From assembly GCA_965112735.1 (NCBI GenBank), contig OZ218960.1, positions 248,001 to 312,000 on the forward strand: a DNA stretch of 64,000 nucleotides. The letters run 5' to 3'. The notes beneath the pieces are model-generated. The model made no database searches. It saw only the letters and a list, made by a program, of their open reading frames with translations, and had not been told where the DNA came from. The stretch's first letter is position 1. Every line of letters starts with the position of its first letter. The DNA is from Phaeosaccion multiseriatum. Lineage: Eukaryota; Protista; Ochrophyta, other classes. The position numbers and the translations under genes were made by a program. Positions 18,757 to 29,759 of this stretch are shown here, piece by piece.

Positions 18757-18824
18757 GCCCCACAGTCGGGTATCACATGTCCTCTCCTCCCGACTGCTTT
18801 CATGCATTCACCGATACGGCTACG

Positions 18825-18862
<38 letters not shown>

Positions 18863-20547
18863 CACACACAACGCACACACATATATACATACACACACGC
18901 ACACACACGCACCCGCACCTGCAACGTCTTCCCTCTCCAACACCGTCGCTCCCAGCTCGGCCGCCAACACCCTTGCCATCGTGCTCTTGCCGCTCCCCGG
19001 GGGGCCGGCCAGGACCAGGAGCTGGTGCCGCGACACCTGCATGCAGTTACATAATATGGGCCGGCATATGGGCAGTCAAGTGGGCGCGGGGGGCGAGTCG
19101 GGATGGTGAGAAAGCATAGTGGAACACGTGAGAATGGTCTGCTCCGCTTGCTTACCGCGCCGGCTGTGCGGGGCTCTCGGAAGGCCGCCTCGAGCCACCC
19201 CCGCACCTCCAGCAGCTTTTTGCTGTGCACCGCCAAATCGGCCGAGCAGTGAGGGGCGTACTTCTGGTACCACAGCTGATTCGCCGCCCCATACGCCTTG
19301 CTTCCCTTCTCCTCCTCCTCCTCCTCCTCCTCCTCCTCTTCGTCGTCGTCGTCCTGGTCCTCCTCCTTCCCCTTCCTCCTCCTCCCTGCTGCTGAACCCT
19401 CTCTTCGTGCTACTCCTGCTGCTGCTTCTTCTCCAGCACTGGCCGGCCTTGGCCGCTTCTTCCCTCCCGTTTGACGGGCAGTCCATAGCTGATCCTGGCC
19501 CTGCCAGCCCGTCTGCAGTTGCAAGGTACCCTGCTGCTGCTGCCGCTGCTGCGTCGTGTTCCTCGTCGCCGCGGTCTTGGCCTTGCTACTCTTCGCCTGC
19601 GACTGCTGTTGCTCCTCCCGCCCCCCTTTCTGCGGCCCTCTTGCTGCGCCAGTCTTCGGAGAAAGGGCCTGCATGCTACTGCCCTCATCACGGTGCTCAT
19701 CGTCGCTACTGTCAAAGCTCAAATCGATGGTCGAAGGGGGTGGTGCCGCTGCTGCTGGTGGCGGCGCTGCACCTCTCCCCCCGCCCCCGCTGTTGGTGCC
19801 GCCACTCTTGCCTGCCGCCGTCGCCTTGGAAGGGGCCGAAGCAGCACCGGGGGCTTTGAAAATAGAAGCGATTGACATGGTTCTCCGCTGTGGCACCTGC
19901 CCCGCCCTGAGGTGCTCTGGCTGCTGCCGAGCCTGTTTTCGCTTTTTCGCCATGGGCGCGCTGCCGCCGCCGCCGCTGCTGCCTCCCTTCCCCCTACTCT
20001 GCCCACCACCGGTTGCTGGTTCCTCATACTCATCGTCATCCTCACTGCTGCTGTCGAGGGTGCGAGCAGAGGCAGCAGCAGCAGTAGGGGGGACAGCCGC
20101 CGCTGTCCGGCTTGGTGCCGAGGTAGCTCGCCATGGATCCTTATCAAAGACTTCATCGTCCGTGGTAGACTCATCGTCATCTGGGGAGCGATCAGGGGCA
20201 AGTGAGCAGGCCAAGGGGGGGGGGAAGGAGACAAGCGAGCAGCAACAAATTGCTCTGTTACGTGAGCACCTCTCTTTTCGCCCCCTCGTGGCGAAGGGGA
20301 CTACTAAGAAGAAGAAATAACAGGTGTGGTGCACTACGAGCTGTGTCAGAGCTTAAAGACCAGAGAGAAGCAGGCACTTGAGTCTTCAATGATATCCCTC
20401 AATAATGGGCCAACGGCGAGGGGCCGCATCTTGGGAAGGGAGGAGCCGCGCCACGCTAGAGCCACCGCCACTATGAAGCATCTCACCTTCTATTGGCTTC
20501 TTCTTCACCACCTTGCGTAGCTTCCTCCTCCTCCCCTGGTCCGCCAT
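15210..20547 (-). CDS. RAD17: Cell-cycle checkpoint clamp loader RAD17
   Basis: Motifs across about ten exons: LWYQKYAP-x4-LAVHSKK, Walker A GPPGSGKST, VLLEEVPN, IFCNAI, GGDLRH, FHALGKLVYCKR, and acidic terminus VEEIEDW* (stop 15212-15210). First exon 20547-20487 (MADQGRRRKLRKVVKKKPIE) is followed by a long disordered exon. The 3' exon boundaries are less certain. Confidence 0.92.
16165..16245. repeat. Three 27-bp tandem units, each containing CAGTTGGTGATAC, in a RAD17 intron
   Basis: The motif starts at 16170, 16197 and 16224 (27-bp period). Confidence 0.92.
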
Positions 20548-20755
20548 CGTTGGGGAGGGGATTGGGATTGGGGGGTGCACACCCACTTTGCGCTTCATGG
20601 CCCGCCCGTACTCTTCCAAAGTACCCGATTTCTGTAACGTTTTTGTTTTTTAAAAATAAAAGGACGCGGCGATTTTCCACAAGCGGCCGGCAGTAAATGA
20701 GAGACCAAAGAAGAACGATGAAGATCTGAAGACCCGGTAAAAAGAAGGGGGGACG
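20548..20755. promoter_or_regulatory. Probable bidirectional promoter between RAD17 and the ETR-like kinase
   Basis: Only 208 bp separate the divergent predicted ATGs. The interval contains a rare AT-rich island (ttttgttttttaaaaataaa). Inferred from gene geometry only. Confidence 0.55.
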
Positions 20756-23700
20756 ATGGTACTGAGTGGGAGTCCCCTGTGCGCCATCGAAAAGGACACG
20801 GGGTACGGCATCGTTGTGACGCTGTGCGATCTTGTCATCGCAGTGAGCTACTACATCATCCCCGTCATTCTCGGTAAGGGGTTCTCTCTCTCTTCAGGAA
20901 CAGCAGCACCGGTTTCCCTTTCCCCCCTCCTCTACTGCTACTCTGCCGGCACCCGACACCTCGTCCCCCCTCCCCTCCCCTTCCATGGATGAACGAACGG
21001 TGCATTTTGCAGCTTTATTGGTCAACGTTACCAACCTAGACTTGAGCGGCCTGACGGACTCCGATCCGAAGAATGACCGAATGTTCGCAAGGGTCTGGGT
21101 GCTCGTGGTGCTTTTTCTTCTCTTCATAGGTGAGGCTCGGCAGCGGCTGTAGCGGGCGTTACTCTTGCTTGTACTCCTCCTGCAATGCATTTCTTCCTGC
21201 CTCGACCTGCCTCACCCACCATTCTGTCCCCCCATTGGACGCTCCCTAGTCGTCCATTCGATCGCCTTCCCAGTCGCAGTCGCACCCATGGCTGTCCCTT
21301 ACTCTTTCCTTCGGCCCATCGCCCCCCCTCCCCGCCCTGCCTCCCTCCCTCACCACCACTCACACCTGTACACACACAAACAAGTCCTGTGTGGAACTGT
21401 CCACCTCTTCCACGGCTTGGAAAGTGTCGTGGACATGCCTGCTGGCACAATGGTATTCATGGAGGTCGCCACAGCAGTTGTGAGCCTGTCCACAGCCGTC
21501 TATCTGGCGCTCTTCTGCCCACGGATTCTGCCTTACATCCGCTCCAAGGAGCTGGCCAAGCTGAAGCAATGGCAACGGGACCTCTACAACGCCAGTATTC
21601 ACCTCATCAGTACGCATTCCTTCGATGTCGATGCCCCGCTCTTCATCACCATGAATCCGTGCGCACCCAAATTTGGTTTCCCCGACAAGTACTCTCTGAT
21701 TGTGAGGACGTTGCTTTGATTCACTCTGACGTAGACACACGGAGGGAGGGAGACGGGAGGTTGATGCAGTCGAGCAAGGCATGAAAAGTGCCAACTCAGC
21801 TGCGCCCTGTCCTCGGCGAACAAGCCTCTGCTATGCATACTAATTACCCCCCCCCCTCTACTCTCCTCTCCCCATAACTTCATTTTGCCTGTACTGCTGT
21901 ATCACCAACAGGGAAGGAGCTTCTTTGACATTGTGCATCCCGATGATGTGGCGCTCGTACGCTCGGAGCTGCAGAGGCTCAAGAACAAGGCTCTCGGTAA
22001 GGATATGGCAGGGGGATGGTTTGCCCCTACAAGCTTAGTTAGACTTTTGCCGAGCGCATCAGGGGTCGATCAGTACGGCTTGGTCCTGAACAGGGGATGA
22101 AAAACTAGACTCAGGGAAAGGCGTGTTTGATAGTCGACCGCTTTGTATGTGTTGAGTGTGTGTAGCAATGTGTGGAAGGCGAGGACTCACTGCACATGTG
22201 TGCTGCTCTGGACGCTGCTGTACAGGAGAGAAATGTGAAATCCACCCCTATTGGGGGCGTGCCCCCTTGGGGGATGTGCCGCATGGGGCTGCCCCATTGG
22301 GGTTCCCCTCTCTTCTCTCTTCTCCTCATTCTCTCTTCAAACATCCCACCTCTATGTCTCACACTCTGTCTCACGCGCTCTCTGTCTCCGTCCCCTACCC
22401 CCCTCCGTTCTCTCTCTTTATGGCAAACACACATGCATGCGCACGCACACACACACACACAAATACACGCACACACACAAACACACACAAACAGTTCAAA
22501 CCCGTTCAGGTCACAACAATAAGCTCAAGTCGCAGGGGAGCGACACGCTGGACCCTGACCAGCATTCTGTGGAGAGCATTGAATTCCGCGTGCAGCCTAA
22601 CGGTTTCCGCACCATCCAGGTGGAGAGCCTGGTGAGCTGCAGGGAAGAGATTGACTCCACCTGGACGTTCCTTATCATCACACGTGACATCTCACTGCGG
22701 AAGGCCAAGTGAGTACACAACGGTAGTTATGAGCTGCTCTCAACAGACTCTTTTGGGCTGTCTCTTGAGAGGGCATCGTAGCTTTCATCTGTTGCCATCT
22801 GTTGGTCTTGCTGCGCCTCGGCATCGTAGCTGCCATCTGTTGGTTTTTATGCGCCTCTCTCTCAACCTCTATTCTCTGCTGCTGCTCCTGTATCACCAAC
22901 TTGCCTATTGCTGCCTCCCTGTACCTTGAACTGTATCACCAACTGCCCAGGGAGGACTCTGAAGAGGAAAGGCGCAAAAACGACATGTGCACGCGACTCA
23001 AGTACATCTCCTCCATCGCTCACGACCTCAAGACGGTAGGTGGGGGTGAAGGCGGCTGCTTGCACATGAGGGGTGGAAACCTTCGCTCCCAAGGGGGGGG
23101 GGACTCAGGGGGTTCAGGGGGATGAGTCCGGAAGCTTACGGGTGAAGCGGCGGGTCGCGCACACACGCACGGACAAGGCCATTTAGAGAAGCGTTGGAAA
23201 GGAGAGGAGAGGAGAGGAGAGGAGAGGAGAGGAGAGGAGAGGAGAGGAGAGGAGAGCGGCAAGGCTGCCCCGAGGGTGGACGAGGAGGGGGAGGGCCAAG
23301 GCAAGGATGAAGACCAAATAGACCAGACGTGTCTCCTTCCACAAGCCAGCGTGAGAAGCGAGGGGTGAGGAGTGAGGGGTGAGGAGTGAAGGGTGAGGGG
23401 TGAGGCAGGGCAAGCCACACATGTGAGTAGGAGAACAGATACGTTACGGGTTAGGCTGCCACCGGAAGAGGCCCGAGAGGAGCCTCTCTGTGCTCAGATT
23501 GGGCTGCTGCTGGGGGGGCGCAGTGTGGTTATCCACCATCCTATCACAGCTGGCATCGCTAGAGAGTGGGGCCCTCTCCCACCAATCACCCCCTCCCCAT
23601 CCACTGCCATCCCTCCACCCGGCCCTTCGTCGTGTGTCTCACAGCCCCTCGCTGTCCTGCAAATGAGCTTGGAGCTCGTGAGCAACAAACACAAGAAGCA

Positions 23701-25770
23701 CTCAGAAGAACTCAACATCTTAAGGGAGGCCCAGGTGAGGCTCAGTTGGTCCTCTCTCCTGTGAGGAGGAGGTTTGCTCTACCTCTCGCACTTGGGAGGG
23801 AGCACTTTGCTTTACCTTTCGCACCTGTGCGGCTCAGAGACATTAGAAGCACGTTTCTTTGCCCCTCACGACTGGAACCCTCCGTCTGTCACCAGTGGCT
23901 CAGCTCCAGTACCACAGACACTGCATCTGTCACCACTGGCTGGACATTAAACCATCGCGTGGACATGCGTATGTGTGTGTGTGTGTGCGTGCGTGTGTGT
24001 TCGTGTGAATGCGTGCGCGCGCGTCTGAGTGCGTGTACGCGCGCGTGAGTGCATGTTTAGGTGTATGGGTATGGTGTGTGCGTATGTATGTGTATTCATG
24101 TGTGTATAGCGCCACTGAACCTTCTCCACCCCCCCCACCCCTCCCGCAGTCCTCCCTCTACCTTGCACCCTCACCCCCCCCCCCCCACACGCGTTGGGTG
24201 TCTTTAATCGTCGCCAATCAATGAAACCATCAATCAATCAGCTCTCCCTGGAGCTCATGAAGGTCACAGTGCATCAAGCAGTGGACATCGGCCGAGCCAC
24301 CACGGAAGGAATCGTCATGAAACCGCAGTACGACTCCGTCTCTATAGGAAACATGCTTTCCAAGTGCCGGCACGTCATCAACGGTTACAGCAAAGTTGTG
24401 CCCATACGGTACGTCCATGGCCGAAGTGCGGCTCAGTGTCAAACTGTAGCTAGGAATCCACCTCCGTCCAAATCCCCCAACCCAAAACCTAACCCTACCC
24501 AACCCACCCCACCCCGGCTACTCACAAGTTCTGCATTTGTTCTTCCCCTCGTCACCCACGGTACCACGATGCCCCGCCCCGACAGATTCGTGTTACAAAA
24601 AGGGCTGGCGAGTTGCCACCTAGTCACAGATGGCGAGTGGCTGTGGCAGATGGCGATAAACCTGTGCACCAACGCCTGCAAGTACACCTCCAAGGGTTAC
24701 ATCTCGCTGGAGATGGCCCTCGTGGAGAAGGTTCATCAGGATGCTACCGATGGTTCGGGTCATCAGCAGCAGGGCCGTAAGCAGCAGGGCCGTAAGCAGC
24801 AGGACCAAGAGCAGCGAGATATGCATTTGGTGGTCCTAGTGGCAGATACGGGGATCGGAGTGCCGGAGAGTCAGAGACAAAAGCTGTTCAAGCCCTTCTC
24901 ACAGGTGCAGGAGTATCAGAATCAGGGCACGGGGCTGGGGCTCTATGGAATCAAGGAGAAGGTGTCCGTGCTTGGGGGTCAGTGCGGCGTGGAGCCCAAT
25001 AATCCACACGGCTCAATCTTCTTCTTCACAGTGCCCTATACAGCCGACAACACCGTGGAGTGCGAGAGAGACCCCCAGGACAGACTTCACTCCGGCTCCC
25101 GCTTCTGGGACGATGATACCGTTCAGCAGGACGACCCCAATGACACCCATCGGCCGTCGGAAGTGGAGGAGCTGCCGTTGGAGCAGCTGCATCTATCCAG
25201 GTTGTTGCAGCTGCAAGGAGACCGGGTGGCGAGGAGGAAGGCAGAAGAGGCGACAGCAGCGGGAGCGCGAGCAGAGCGCGCAGCATCCATGGCTCTAAGG
25301 GAGGAGGGTGGGGGTGGCGGAGCACCGGCGGCGGCGGGAGACAAGGAGGAAACCAGCAAACGGGCGAGTCGCAGCAGCAGCAGCAGCAGCAGCAGCTGCC
25401 TTCGGTTCGATGAACGCTCCGCCGCGGGCGGCAGTGCCGTCGGCGTAGGGGGGTTGGGCTCGTATGCTCCTCTCATGGGGGGATGGGGTATCGCAAGCAT
25501 TCGCCAGACGCCGACCCCTGAAGCGCAAGAGGGGGACCCGCTGGGCGGACGAGCGACAGTGTTGTTGTCGATGCTTCAGCAGCCCATGCGGAACCTCGTG
25601 TGCGGAGCAAAGCGCAGGCTCGGCCAACTCGGATTGAAGAGGATGATCGGCAAGGACGGGGCGATTCACCCCGTCGAGGTGGAGACAGACACGCCCACGG
25701 CGGCTCCTGCTATTACTGCTGCTGCTGCTGCTGCTGCTCCTGGGACCAAGAAGCAACAACCGCAGAAAGT

Positions 25771-25801
<31 letters not shown>

Positions 25802-28290
25802 GCAGCCGCAGCAGCCGCAGAAGGTGGGTCATGGCGCAGGCCTTCTCCCGAGGGTGTAGATAGTGAAAAGCCTGCAGCCCATGCGCGCTCGGGCTGGCCG
25901 ACGGAGCGGCAGGATGAAGAGAGCGGGGGGGGCGAATGGTTTGAGTTTGACACTTTCGTGCCGCTGGAGACCCTCACGAGTGCTCACACTCGGCCGTCCT
26001 CTTCCATGAGGATCGACCCGGACACGCTGGAGGCTGGACTAGGGGAGGGGGCTTGTCCGGCGGCGGCTGTATCACCAACTGGGACCTCTACCGAGGTTGG
26101 TACTGTTGCGGGCCTTGCTACGGCTGCTGCTGCTGTTCCTGCTGCTGCTCCGGCGGGTGCTCCAGCTCCGACTGCTGCTACCGTCGAGACTGGCGCTGGC
26201 GCTTCGACGGCTGCTTCGTCTACCCCGGGCAAGGGAAGCATCCTTATCATTGATGACACCAGGTACGTATTCGCTGGCTCCAGCTACGACTCCGTATGTG
26301 TTGACCCTCCCCTCCACAGGCACCAGTCTGCACACCTCATTACTCACTCACTCACTTACTCACTCACTCACTGAGTCAGTCAGTCAGTCACTCACTCACT
26401 CACTCACTCACTCACTCACTCACTCACTCACTCACTCACTCACTCACTCACTCACTCACTCACTCACTCACTCACTCACTCACTCACTCACTCACTCACT
26501 CACTCACTCACTCACTGAGTCAGTCAGTCAGTCAGTCAGTCAGTCAGTCAGTCAGTCAGTCACTCGTTCACCGTCATTGACGTAGTGATTCATACCCTTA
26601 TTGACGTATGCTGTACACAGGAATGTGCTGGCGATGTACGGGCGGGCCGCGAGGAAGGAGAACTACGAGGTGTTCACTGCCATCAATGGTGAGTGTGTGT
26701 ATGAGTATGTGTATGTGCGCGCGTGTATGTGTGCGTGCGTGCGTGTGTGTAGTGTGTGTGTGTGTGTTTGCGGGTGTGCGTGTTGAGAGGAACCCAATGT
26801 GGAAGGAGTCTGAAGTTCCTCATCCGCCTCAGAACGAAAAAAACAGCGCTTCGCCTCGCCTCGCCCTTGCTTAGGTCTTGCTCAATCCTTGCTTAGCTGG
26901 TTGTTGCAGGCGCGCTGGCGGAACAGATCGTGGGTGTGTAAACAGTTTGGACTCTAAAGCACAGTCGACATGGCCCCGACATCCGATGTCGCACAACTGA
27001 AGACCAGGGTCGATCCGACTCAGAAGAGCTTCACCCGTACCCCCCCCTCATTGATTTGATTTTCTACAGGAGAGGAAGGGCTGGAGCTGATGACGAAGCG
27101 CATATTCACTCTGGTCATGTGTGACCTTCAAATGCCCATTATGGACGGCACAGAGTGCATTTCTCGCCTCAGAGAGTTCGAAAGGACGAACCGAAGGGCA
27201 GAGAGGCAAATTGTTCTCTCCATGTCCACTTCCTCCGACGGATCCGCCATGGAGGCTTGCGTGCGCTGCGGAAGTAAGTCATCACAGTCCCTCCTTCCCT
27301 GCTACAGCTTCGGTTTGAGTTTTAAAAAAGAGTTAGTTCCCTGGACAAGCATCGTCGAGCCGGAAGACCAATACCGATGTGCGATATCGCTATGGTTGGA
27401 GCTCAGTGAACGCTTTCTCTCCTTTGCTCACTGCCTCTCACCCACCTCATGCCTTCACTGACTACTCGTCTTCCTTCTCGTCCTCCTCTTGTGCTGGATG
27501 GAATGGCAGTGGACGGTTTTGCGCCGAAACCTCTTAAGCTCCGCATTTTCGCAAAGGTGAGGAGGAGAAGGAGGAGGAGGAGGAGGAGGAATGTATAGTC
27601 CTCTTGCGGAGAGGATAGAGGACGAGACGCATGCCTTGCCCTAAGCTCTCTGCGACCATCTAACGACACCACCCTTGCTGTTTCTGTTGGCTTACTTTCC
27701 AACCGCTCCAGCTGCTGGATGCGTACTCCTTCTCTATGGAGGACGGAGGCTCAACAGTCACCCCGGGAAGCTCTCGGCTTCAACTGCCTTCAGCAGAAGG
27801 AGACAGCACCACCAGCCGCAGTAGGAGCGGCGGTCTTGTGAGTCCACAGGCGGCGGAGGCGAAACAACCCACGGAGCTCCCGAGCCTTGTGATCCGAGGC
27901 CAACGGGGGTTAGCCTCGTCGCAGAAGCAGGAGCCTGTGGTGATTCAGCAGCAGTCGCCACAGAAGCAGGAGCCTGTGGTGATTCAGCAGCAGTCGCCAC
28001 AGAAGCAGGAGCCTGTGGTGATTCAGCAGCAGTCGCCACAGAAGCAGGGGCCGTTCGTGATGTCGCCACCACCGGCGATTAGGGCTACTGTGAGTCCGAG
28101 TGCGGTGCGGTGGGTGCAGCTGTCGACGAACCGCAACGACGAGAGCAACGACGGAGCCGCGAGCCGTGCAGAGGAGGAGAGAGACAGACGGGGTAGTGTG
28201 GGGCAATACGGCGAGTGGGAGTTGATGTATTGCGGGGAGGTGGAGGCGCGGGGGCTGGCAGACGGTGGGACCTTTGTGCTGTGGAAGTGA
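20756..28290 (+). CDS. Hybrid histidine kinase: ETR1-type ethylene-binding 3-TM domain, PAS, HisKA, HATPase_c, receiver
   Basis: Thirteen GT-AG exons: 20756-20873, 21013-21129, 21385-21701, 21912-21996, 22510-22708, 22951-23035, 23645-23734, 24242-24408, 24586-26262, 26621-26688, 27070-27273, 27510-27556 and 27712-28290. Motifs: DLVIAVSYYIIP, FIVLCGTVHL, GRSFFDIVHPDD, IAHDLKTPL, NLCTNACKYT, DTGIGV, LFKPF, GTGLGL, ILIIDD, CDLQMPIMDG, DGFAPKP. Confidence 0.93.
23201..23256. repeat. (GGAGA)n pentanucleotide repeat
   Basis: Visible directly in a kinase intron. Confidence 0.95.
26342..26563. repeat. (TCAC)n/(TCAG)n compound intronic microsatellite
   Basis: Visible directly in the intron that splits the receiver domain. 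Confidence 0.95.
27919..28048 (+). repeat. Coding 39-bp tandem repeat (SPQKQEPVVIQQQ, about 3 copies) in the kinase C-terminal tail
   Basis: cagaagcaggagcctgtggtgattcagcagcagtcgcca repeated three times. Confidence 0.92.
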
Positions 28291-28631: not shown

Positions 28632-29759
28632 TCAAAACGTTAGACAGCGGCCCTCTTCATCCGCTCCTCCAACTACATCTTCCTCTTCCTCCTCCTCCTC
28701 CTCCTCCTCCTTCTCCTCCTGTATCGCCAACTGCTGTTCGTGTCGCCCCCCCTCCGCCTGCAGCTCCCCTGACTTCTGCATGGACGACTCTACAAGTTTG
28801 GCTATCTCCTTGACGAGGGCCTTGTTGTCTCGCTTCAGCGAGCTCGCCTGCCGCGCAATGGCCTTGAGAAGCTTCTCTGCCGCTGCTTTGGTCTTGCTCG
28901 AGCTCGGGTCCCACTCCACCATGCTCTTGGCATCCTTCGTCGCGAGTTTAATGTGGTTTTGGGACAGGTGAAATGTGGCCCTCAACTCAAACGCCGTGGC
29001 ACAGCTTCTCTTCAACTGCTCTCGCTCCTCCCTCGTCCCAACACCAGGAGCGACGTACTTCTTCATTAACGCCACCACGACCGTCGTCACCGCCACCCCT
29101 TCTGCCCACCTATGCAGCTTACCATGGCACCGAGACAAGTTGAGCAGGCACGAGATATGCAAACACCGGCTTTCAAAGTCCATCGCAGCACTGACCAACT
29201 GAGTCTCTTGTACGCCTTCCGCCTCGTCCTCCCCCCCGTCCTGCTCCTCGTCGAAGAGAACATCGTAGGTACAGGACTGCTGCTGTGGAGAGTCGCTGTC
29301 GCACTCCTCCATGCCAGAAATCATTCCCCACCTGTAGCCCCCCTCTGCTTGCTGACGCGTCATGACTGCCTGACCGATCGTCAGCGGTTGCAGGGTCTTG
29401 CACACCCCCTCATAGATCAAACCTGCCGCCCACGCATCACCCATCTTGAATAGGGCATTGCCGCGTACCTTCCACTCCTCCCCCGTCTCCTTCGTTACCA
29501 CTGGAGCGCCCCCCTGTTCAAAATCCATGAGCTTCTCCAACCGACTACTCTCCACCACCATCTCCTCGTCATCCTCACTGCTACTGCTGGCAATGCCATC
29601 ACAGAAGGCCGTCGATGCCTTATTGTGGAGAAGGACGTCAACTCTTGGTCTCGACTCCTCTGAGTCAACGCAAGTAACAGTAGCTTTGCAACACAGCGAC
29701 CCGGATGGACCCAGTCCTTTCACCCTGACCTCACTGCCGACGCTATACTCCACGGTCAT
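28632..29759 (-). CDS. Intronless TPR-repeat protein with putative Tudor/SH3-like segments
   Basis: Uninterrupted 375-aa ORF. TPR-like helices: EEWKVRGNALFKMGD, SCLLNLSRCHGKLHRWAEG, AFELRATFHLSQNHIKLATKDAKSMVEWDP. Coiled and acidic tail. Confidence 0.8.
   Translation of the reverse strand: MTVEYSVGSEVRVKGLGPSGSLCCKATVTCVDSEESRPRVDVLLHNKASTAFCDGIASSSSEDDEEMVVESSRLEKLMDFEQGGAPVVTKETGEEWKVRGNALFKMGDAWAAGLIYEGVCKTLQPLTIGQAVMTRQQAEGGYRWGMISGMEECDSDSPQQQSCTYDVLFDEEQDGGEDEAEGVQETQLVSAAMDFESRCLHISCLLNLSRCHGKLHRWAEGVAVTTVVVALMKKYVAPGVGTREEREQLKRSCATAFELRATFHLSQNHIKLATKDAKSMVEWDPSSSKTKAAAEKLLKAIARQASSLKRDNKALVKEIAKLVESSMQKSGELQAEGGRHEQQLAIQEEKEEEEEEEEEEDVVGGADEEGRCLTF

Follow-up and report, generated by a model that had tools for sequence, protein, structure and literature searches.

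A predicted ethylene-receptor-like hybrid histidine kinase, divided by introns and carrying Glu at the Lys91 position, in Phaeosaccion multiseriatum

The 64,000-nucleotide window analysed here (Phaeosaccion multiseriatum contig OZ218960.1, positions 248,001 to 312,000; all coordinates below count from its first letter) contains on the plus strand, between 20756 and 28290, a candidate gene for an ethylene-receptor-like hybrid histidine kinase. Our model comprises 13 exons (Table 1), whose spliced frame of 3753 nt encodes 1250 amino acids (aa) with no internal stop. It was built by reading the DNA with four relatives as tblastn guides, since the open reading frame (ORF) track contains only fragments. 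All 12 introns are of the GT-AG type, with eleven CAG acceptors and one AAG, and the donors seen are GTAAGG, GTGAGG, GTGAGT, GTAAGT, GTACGT and GTAGGT. The GC content at third codon positions (GC3) is 0.65-0.86 per exon, except for the 47-nt exon 12 (0.53), and the overall GC content of the introns is 0.50-0.62. The product is predicted to be a membrane-bound protein of ~1250 aa, consisting of an ethylene-binding domain (EBD), a divergent PAS-like domain, HisKA, HATPase_c, a long disordered linker and a receiver. The proposed splicing relies on homology, reading frame and codon bias. In BLASTP, residues 25-591 of the model and residues 15-561 of P0002, a single-ORF protein (retrieved sequences are given as P numbers), form one alignment that spans eight predicted junctions (E 2e-61), and P0134 and P0147 behave in the same way.

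An initial annotation of this DNA had located the three helices of an ETR1-type ligand-binding domain in strings split by introns, and all three strings could be read from exons 1 to 3. The two joins it proposed, 20873 to 21013 and 21129 to 21385, are in frame and GT-AG, and the spliced EBD scored 83.9 bits as one domain (profile positions 22-124, all three helices) against a hidden Markov model (HMM) made from the 112 full-length EBDs among the fetched sequences, the model itself excluded. With the same HMM, 200 shuffles of the EBD reached at most 9.5 bits, and exons 1, 2 and 3 taken singly gave 19.9, 2.8 and 43.0 bits. The second join cuts FI/VLCG, the most conserved motif of the family; intron 2 interrupts this motif, and only the join 21129 to 21385 restores it. 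The exon 1/2 join is the less constrained of the two. When exons were run singly against Pfam, ETR1_N (PF25487) matched exon 1 (profile 7-24, 14.6 bits) and exon 3 (profile 49-95, 23.7 bits) in colinear order, each match falling short alone of the cut-off of 27 bits. A word-index search with the EBD of P0007 returned three proteins only; the exhaustive profile search that was needed beyond this, run with EBDs from relatives together with the exon pieces of the window, yielded 1464 proteins at E<=0.001. By the Kyte-Doolittle scale the protein has three hydrophobic segments (~16-48, 60-94 and 101-127), all within residues 16-127. A search of the PDB found no solved structure matching the exon-3 part of the EBD. 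Together, the evidence supports an EBD of the ETR1_N type that is carried by an intact hybrid histidine kinase, in a genome of the stramenopile type.

The initial annotation named D25, Y32, I35, P36, I62, C65 and H69 of ETR1 as the residues needed for ethylene/Cu(I) binding, and these are the seven considered here. For the comparison, ETR1 numbering was anchored on two plant sequences, P0172 (Protea cynaroides) and P0240 ('Ethylene receptor, partial', Mucuna pruriens). In an alignment of 113 rows including the model, the model has D, Y, I, P, I, C and H at ETR1 positions 25, 32, 35, 36, 62, 65 and 69, so that all seven are matched as claimed. The spacing, described before as identical, is so within each helix, and D25, Y32, I35 and P36 keep even their numbers, but helices I and II are joined by a loop that exceeds that of plants by 16 residues. 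Because of this longer loop, the Cys and His are numbered C81 (=C65) and H85 (=H69), and the remaining residues are I78 (=I62) and E105 (=K91). The respective codons lie at 20828-20830 (D25), 21390-21392 (C81), 21402-21404 (H85) and 21462-21464 (E105). T94 and S98 are kept as well. The Cu(I)-ligand columns C65 and H69 are invariant in 113/113 sequences; these EBDs are the top of one profile search, and column counts are therefore not family-wide frequencies. The requirement of seven residues for ethylene binding by ETR1 is stated in PMC11819568, which cites Wang et al. 2006.

Downstream of the EBD, exon 4 gave a match to Pfam PAS_3 (E 0.002, profile 25-48), and the relatives show weak PAS matches at the same place. 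No GAF domain was matched after the EBD when the exons were run against Pfam. In agreement with the initial annotation, motif positions and alignment show the H, N, G1, F and G2 boxes and the Asp and Lys of the receiver to be intact. The H box SIAHDLKTPL contains the phospho-acceptor H303 (codon 23021-23023), followed by the N box (418-427), G1 (DTGIG, 480-484), F (FKPF, 494-497) and G2 (GTGLGL, 507-512); HATPase_c was matched at 1e-15 in Pfam. Relative to P0007, the coiled coil ahead of the H box lacks exactly 7 residues, one heptad. The receiver residues, comprising D949/D950 of the acidic pocket, the phospho-acceptor D993 (27123-27125), S1027 and K1049 (27527-27529, in APKPL) align with those of relatives, and exon 11 alone matches Response_reg at 1.3e-5. 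Against the PDB the kinase core had its best match in 7z8n (5e-10) and resembles generic bacterial kinases (7z8n, HK853). A kinship of the core specific to ETR1 was considered and rejected, since 4pl9 was found at 6e-5 only, behind the generic kinases. The linker of ~400 residues is of low complexity, and because GC3 is low in parts of it (0.40-0.52), exon 9 may hide further introns.

Table 1. Predicted exons and other features of the kinase gene (positions in the 64,000-nucleotide window)
Feature	Position	Strand	Content and evidence
Exon 1	20756-20873	+	Start codon and EBD helix I, residues 1-39; ORF, Pfam ETR1_N, plant-EBD alignment
Exon 2	21013-21129	+	Long helix I-II loop and first half of helix II, residues 40-78; GT-AG, frame, helix II of relatives
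Exon 3	21385-21701	+	Rest of helix II, helix III, linker, start of PAS-like region; Pfam ETR1_N, alignment
Exon 4	21912-21996	+	PAS-like core, motif FFDIVHPDD; Pfam PAS_3
Exon 5	22510-22708	+	PAS-like C-terminal strands; colinear with P0001, P0002, P0007; GC3 0.78
Exon 6	22951-23035	+	Coiled-coil linker and H box SIAHDLKT; tblastn with relatives
Exon 7	23645-23734	+	Remainder of first HisKA helix (begins PLAVLQ); completes HDLKT/PL over the junction
Exon 8	24242-24408	+	Second HisKA helix; tblastn 4e-10 with P0001
Putative in-frame intron	24409-24585	+	177 nt; from spacing in relatives
Exon 9	24586-26262	+	HATPase_c (~24620-25045), ~400-residue low-complexity linker, receiver start (IIDD)
Exon 10	26621-26688	+	Receiver helix 1 and strand 2; frame, GT-AG, GC3 0.86, relatives
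Exon 11	27070-27273	+	Receiver core; Pfam Response_reg 1.3e-5; tblastn 3e-12 with P0004
Exon 12	27510-27556	+	Receiver K1049 in APKPL; alignment with relatives
Exon 13 (tentative)	27712-28290	+	End of last receiver helix, 190-residue tail, stop; GTGAGG donor, CAG acceptor, GC3 0.72
Copies of GTATCACCAAC	21899-21909, 22890-22900, 22933-22943, 26069-26079	+	Word count

Two parts of the model deserve separate mention. The stretch 24409-24585 (GTACGT...CAG) is in frame and stop-free, but its 59 codons have no counterpart in any relative. We read it as a probable additional intron hidden from the ORF track, because its removal restores the family spacing ahead of the TDxEWLWQM motif. The last exon is tentative and the least certain part; its tail contains three QKQEPVVIQQQSP repeats. 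As an alternative 3' end, read-through from 27557 would meet a stop near 27597, ~14 residues later, giving a protein of ~1073 aa. An unspliced reading of the EBD was rejected: read-through from exon 1 meets a stop at 20990, and the ORF 21165-21719 gains nothing over exon 3 alone (43 bits in both cases). Contigs of four genomic runs, introns included, are identical to this DNA (e.g. 20700-22423, zero differences). Since these contigs are genomic and carry the introns, they confirm the DNA and not the transcript; 'joints' in the four runs are 20-23-letter matches at dispersed repeat words and no splice joins. The organism's own annotated protein was not found among proteins of 372-1185 aa, where the best match was 43% identical, and a longer record is possible.

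The closest kinase relatives are 35-44% identical and carry PF25487, HisKA, HATPase and REC; over part of the kinase core, identity to the nearest of them reaches 43%. In a weakly resolved EBD tree (134 columns) the model falls into a group of 27 rows of the stramenopile-alveolate-rhizarian (SAR) lineages, with a Shimodaira-Hasegawa-like approximate likelihood ratio (SH-aLRT) support of 86. This group includes sequences of Vitrella and Chromera (chromerids), Minutocellus (diatom) and Epipyxis (chrysophyte) and one from a transcriptome of Durinskia (a dinotom, or diatom-bearing dinoflagellate), and the EBD identity to the members compared is 25-35%. The plant rows, and a large group with a protein of the length of SynEtr1, stand apart from the model. 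The grouping with chromerid, diatom and chrysophyte sequences agrees with the earlier assignment of the DNA to a probable ochrophyte. In the diatom-type clade, position 36 is mostly T (some S/A), position 94 is C (one A) and position 91 is M/L/H/R. Judged from the aligned residues, the model is more canonical at its predicted ligand site than this clade.

We propose, with a probability of roughly 60%, that the locus is one intact nuclear gene for a membrane-bound hybrid kinase which would serve as a copper-dependent sensor of ethylene or a similar small molecule and feed a phosphorelay. The N-terminal domain would hold Cu(I) and bind a small unsaturated molecule, either ethylene or one like it. 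Binding would be relayed via helix III, the PAS-like region and the coiled-coil linker and would alter autophosphorylation at H303, from where the phosphate could pass to D993 and then to a separate His-phosphotransfer protein and a response regulator. Signalling would thus proceed as in the bacterial receptors SynEtr1 and AzoEtr1 and not by the plant CTR1/EIN2 route. A copper-dependent sensor of gas or small hydrocarbons had been suggested in the initial annotation, and the type of EBD, the Cu(I) ligands and the intact kinase are consistent with this; the replacement of Lys91 by Glu, which it had recorded, was given too little weight.

Several observations weigh against our proposal. No basic residue is found at position 91: the alignment places Glu105 there, which reverses the charge. 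Among the 113 EBDs this column contains K in 73, L in 9, D in 9, M in 8, H in 3, R in 3, V in 2 and E in 2 rows. Positions 25 and 91 pair as D-K in 71 rows and as N-D in nine, whereas the combination D-E occurs in 2/113, namely the model and P0217. Azhar et al. 2023 (PMC10266040) report a high conservation of Lys91 and its co-evolution with Asp25. Of the ETR1 variants, K91R kept 63% of ethylene binding, K91M ~6% and K91A ~1%; copper binding was unaffected in Lys91 mutants, and loss of the basic character uncoupled the on and off states of the receptor (PMC10266040). The description as a full ligand-binding signature was therefore overstated. Since Glu105 stands where Asp25 has its conserved partner, ETR1 is probably no exact guide to the affinity and coupling of this protein. 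A Glu opposite Asp25 appears to be a rare state, and ethylene as ligand seems less sure than had been assumed. Furthermore, the EBD is only 32-33% identical to plant and SynEtr1-length sequences and thus distant from tested receptors, and its nearest relatives have lost both P36 and K91, a sign that the ligand chemistry of the lineage may have been relaxed or altered. According to a review of 2020, no SAR homologue has been tested (PMC7700396). Finally, no RNA run is among the sequencing runs that hold the region, and the four runs checked are genomic and derive from one sample.

In an alternative reading, the domain would have the ethylene-binding fold and keep its copper, but in this lineage it would no longer be a high-affinity ethylene sensor and would report something else to the same phosphorelay, such as copper or redox state or another small ligand. 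We consider this unlikely, although it is the most serious of the alternatives. The Glu stands at the very site where a basic character is reported to be needed for normal binding and output (PMC10266040), and SAR relatives vary at positions 25 (N/D), 36 (T), 91 (M/L/H) and 94 (C) around the invariant Cys and His, as would be expected if the metal site were conserved while the ligand pocket drifted. However, the model, unlike its diatom-type relatives, keeps all seven required residues including P36 and D25. K91A and K91M also retain some ethylene binding (PMC10266040), and a protonated Glu could still bond with Asp25.

Two further observations concern positions 25 and 91. Nine EBDs (P0171, P0175, P0193, P0194, P0200, P0206, P0212, P0218 and P0237) combine Asn25 with Asp91 as a swapped polar pair. 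This pair fits the reported coupling of Asp25 and Lys91, and the aligned residues suggest that it is a second solution to the same contact. P0217, the other sequence with Glu91, is a stand-alone ETR1_N domain of 121 aa with the seven binding residues, located at 6001-6366 of L001, an ENA metagenome contig of 12.6 kb. It is surrounded by many short, tightly packed ORFs that lie mostly on the same strand, and one neighbour matches a phage internal virion protein (phrog_511, 1.4e-8). P0217 may be a phage-borne ethylene-binding domain.

The D25-E105 pair sets two carboxylates at a place where an acid-base pair is found in nearly all EBDs. It could also mark a variant sensor whose metal site, ligand preference or on/off polarity differs in kind from ETR1, for instance a gas sensor that is gated by pH or depends on a second metal, as an adaptation to seawater; the D-E pair of P0217 would then have arisen independently on a probable phage contig. 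We regard this idea, including its examples, as improbable. Still less credit is due to the view that the gene is silent, decaying or mis-modelled, so that the three-helix domain is never made complete in a protein. In its favour, the region is in none of the RNA runs, the exon 1/2 join falls within a variable loop, and the last exon and long linker are unconstrained by homology. Against it, the frame of 3753 nt is stop-free with codon-position bias in nearly every exon, all catalytic residues are kept, the alignment of relatives is colinear over the junctions, and only the intron 2 join at FI/VLCG restores the family motif.

The 11-mer GTATCACCAAC occurs in 13 copies in the window, where 0.01 are expected; four copies lie in the gene on the sense strand and nine more elsewhere in the window. 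Three of the copies in the gene are placed shortly before the ends of introns 3 and 5, where one of the three itself provides the acceptor ...CACCAACAG/G, and one is located within the coding linker of exon 9. Contig word depth is 4- to 5-fold higher around 22757-22943 and around 23505-23691, which a dispersed repeat would be expected to cause. Intron 9 is filled by a microsatellite of the CTCACTCA type (26388-26516), and several other introns by (CA)n/(GT)n tracts. The flanking genes, 18820-20334 and 28632-29759, both lie on the opposite (minus) strand, and neither resembles a two-component partner. The motif YQKYAPHCSADLAVHSKKLLEVRGWL of the upstream ORF (18820-20334) recalls clamp-loader proteins of the Rad17/RFC type.

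Ethylene is present in sunlit seawater, and the domain is carried by many microbes. As far as genome annotation is concerned, the gene is otherwise an expected member of its family: its kind and layout are already known, and what is new is the organism, the gene hidden by introns and the D25-E105 pair. Since it keeps all reported binding residues while the charge at the Lys91 position is naturally reversed, the gene is a good test case. That position was recently tied to signal output, and the case bears on the weight of the Asp25-Lys91 bridge.

Ethylene-receptor homologues outside plants have been described before, as the initial annotation acknowledged, and the find is less unusual than was held there. 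Four kinases of the diatom Fistulifera solaris (FsolaHK12-15), with three helices and all conserved residues, were the first SAR homologues reported (Kabbara et al. 2018, PMC6324907), and a review of 2020 lists homologues in zooxanthellae, chromerids, diatoms and brown algae (PMC7700396). Like the model, the SAR homologues carry a three-helix EBD on a histidine kinase, and P0002, P0007 and P0121 share its layout of EBD, PAS-like region, histidine kinase and receiver. In contrast to the SAR homologues, with the F. solaris kinases compared by description only, the model has many introns and a linker of 400 residues. It differs from the diatom-type clade in keeping P36 and T94 and in having Glu91.

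With ETR1 and the other plant receptors of subfamily 1 the model shares the seven site residues, T94, S98 and a receiver on a hybrid kinase, and its EBD is 33% identical to those of P0172 and P0240 over 112-114 residues. It differs from ETR1 in its PAS-like region instead of a GAF domain, in the Glu for Lys91, in the longer helix I-II loop and in its place outside the plant group in the tree. An output through CTR1/EIN2 is not expected.

The model shares with AzoEtr1 and SynEtr1 the order of EBD, PAS and histidine kinase, and its predicted phosphotransfer to a response regulator is the mode of signalling of both. AzoEtr1 of Azospirillum brasilense has this layout and signals to a response regulator, and ethylene binding by its residues 1-130 was shown experimentally (PMC11819568). 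P0268 (844 aa, of SynEtr1 length, its identity as SynEtr1 not being confirmed) is 32% identical to the model over the EBD. In both bacterial receptors a Lys is retained at the site equivalent to K91 (it is K98 in AzoEtr1) and the response regulator is separate, whereas the model has Glu at this position and a receiver fused to the kinase.

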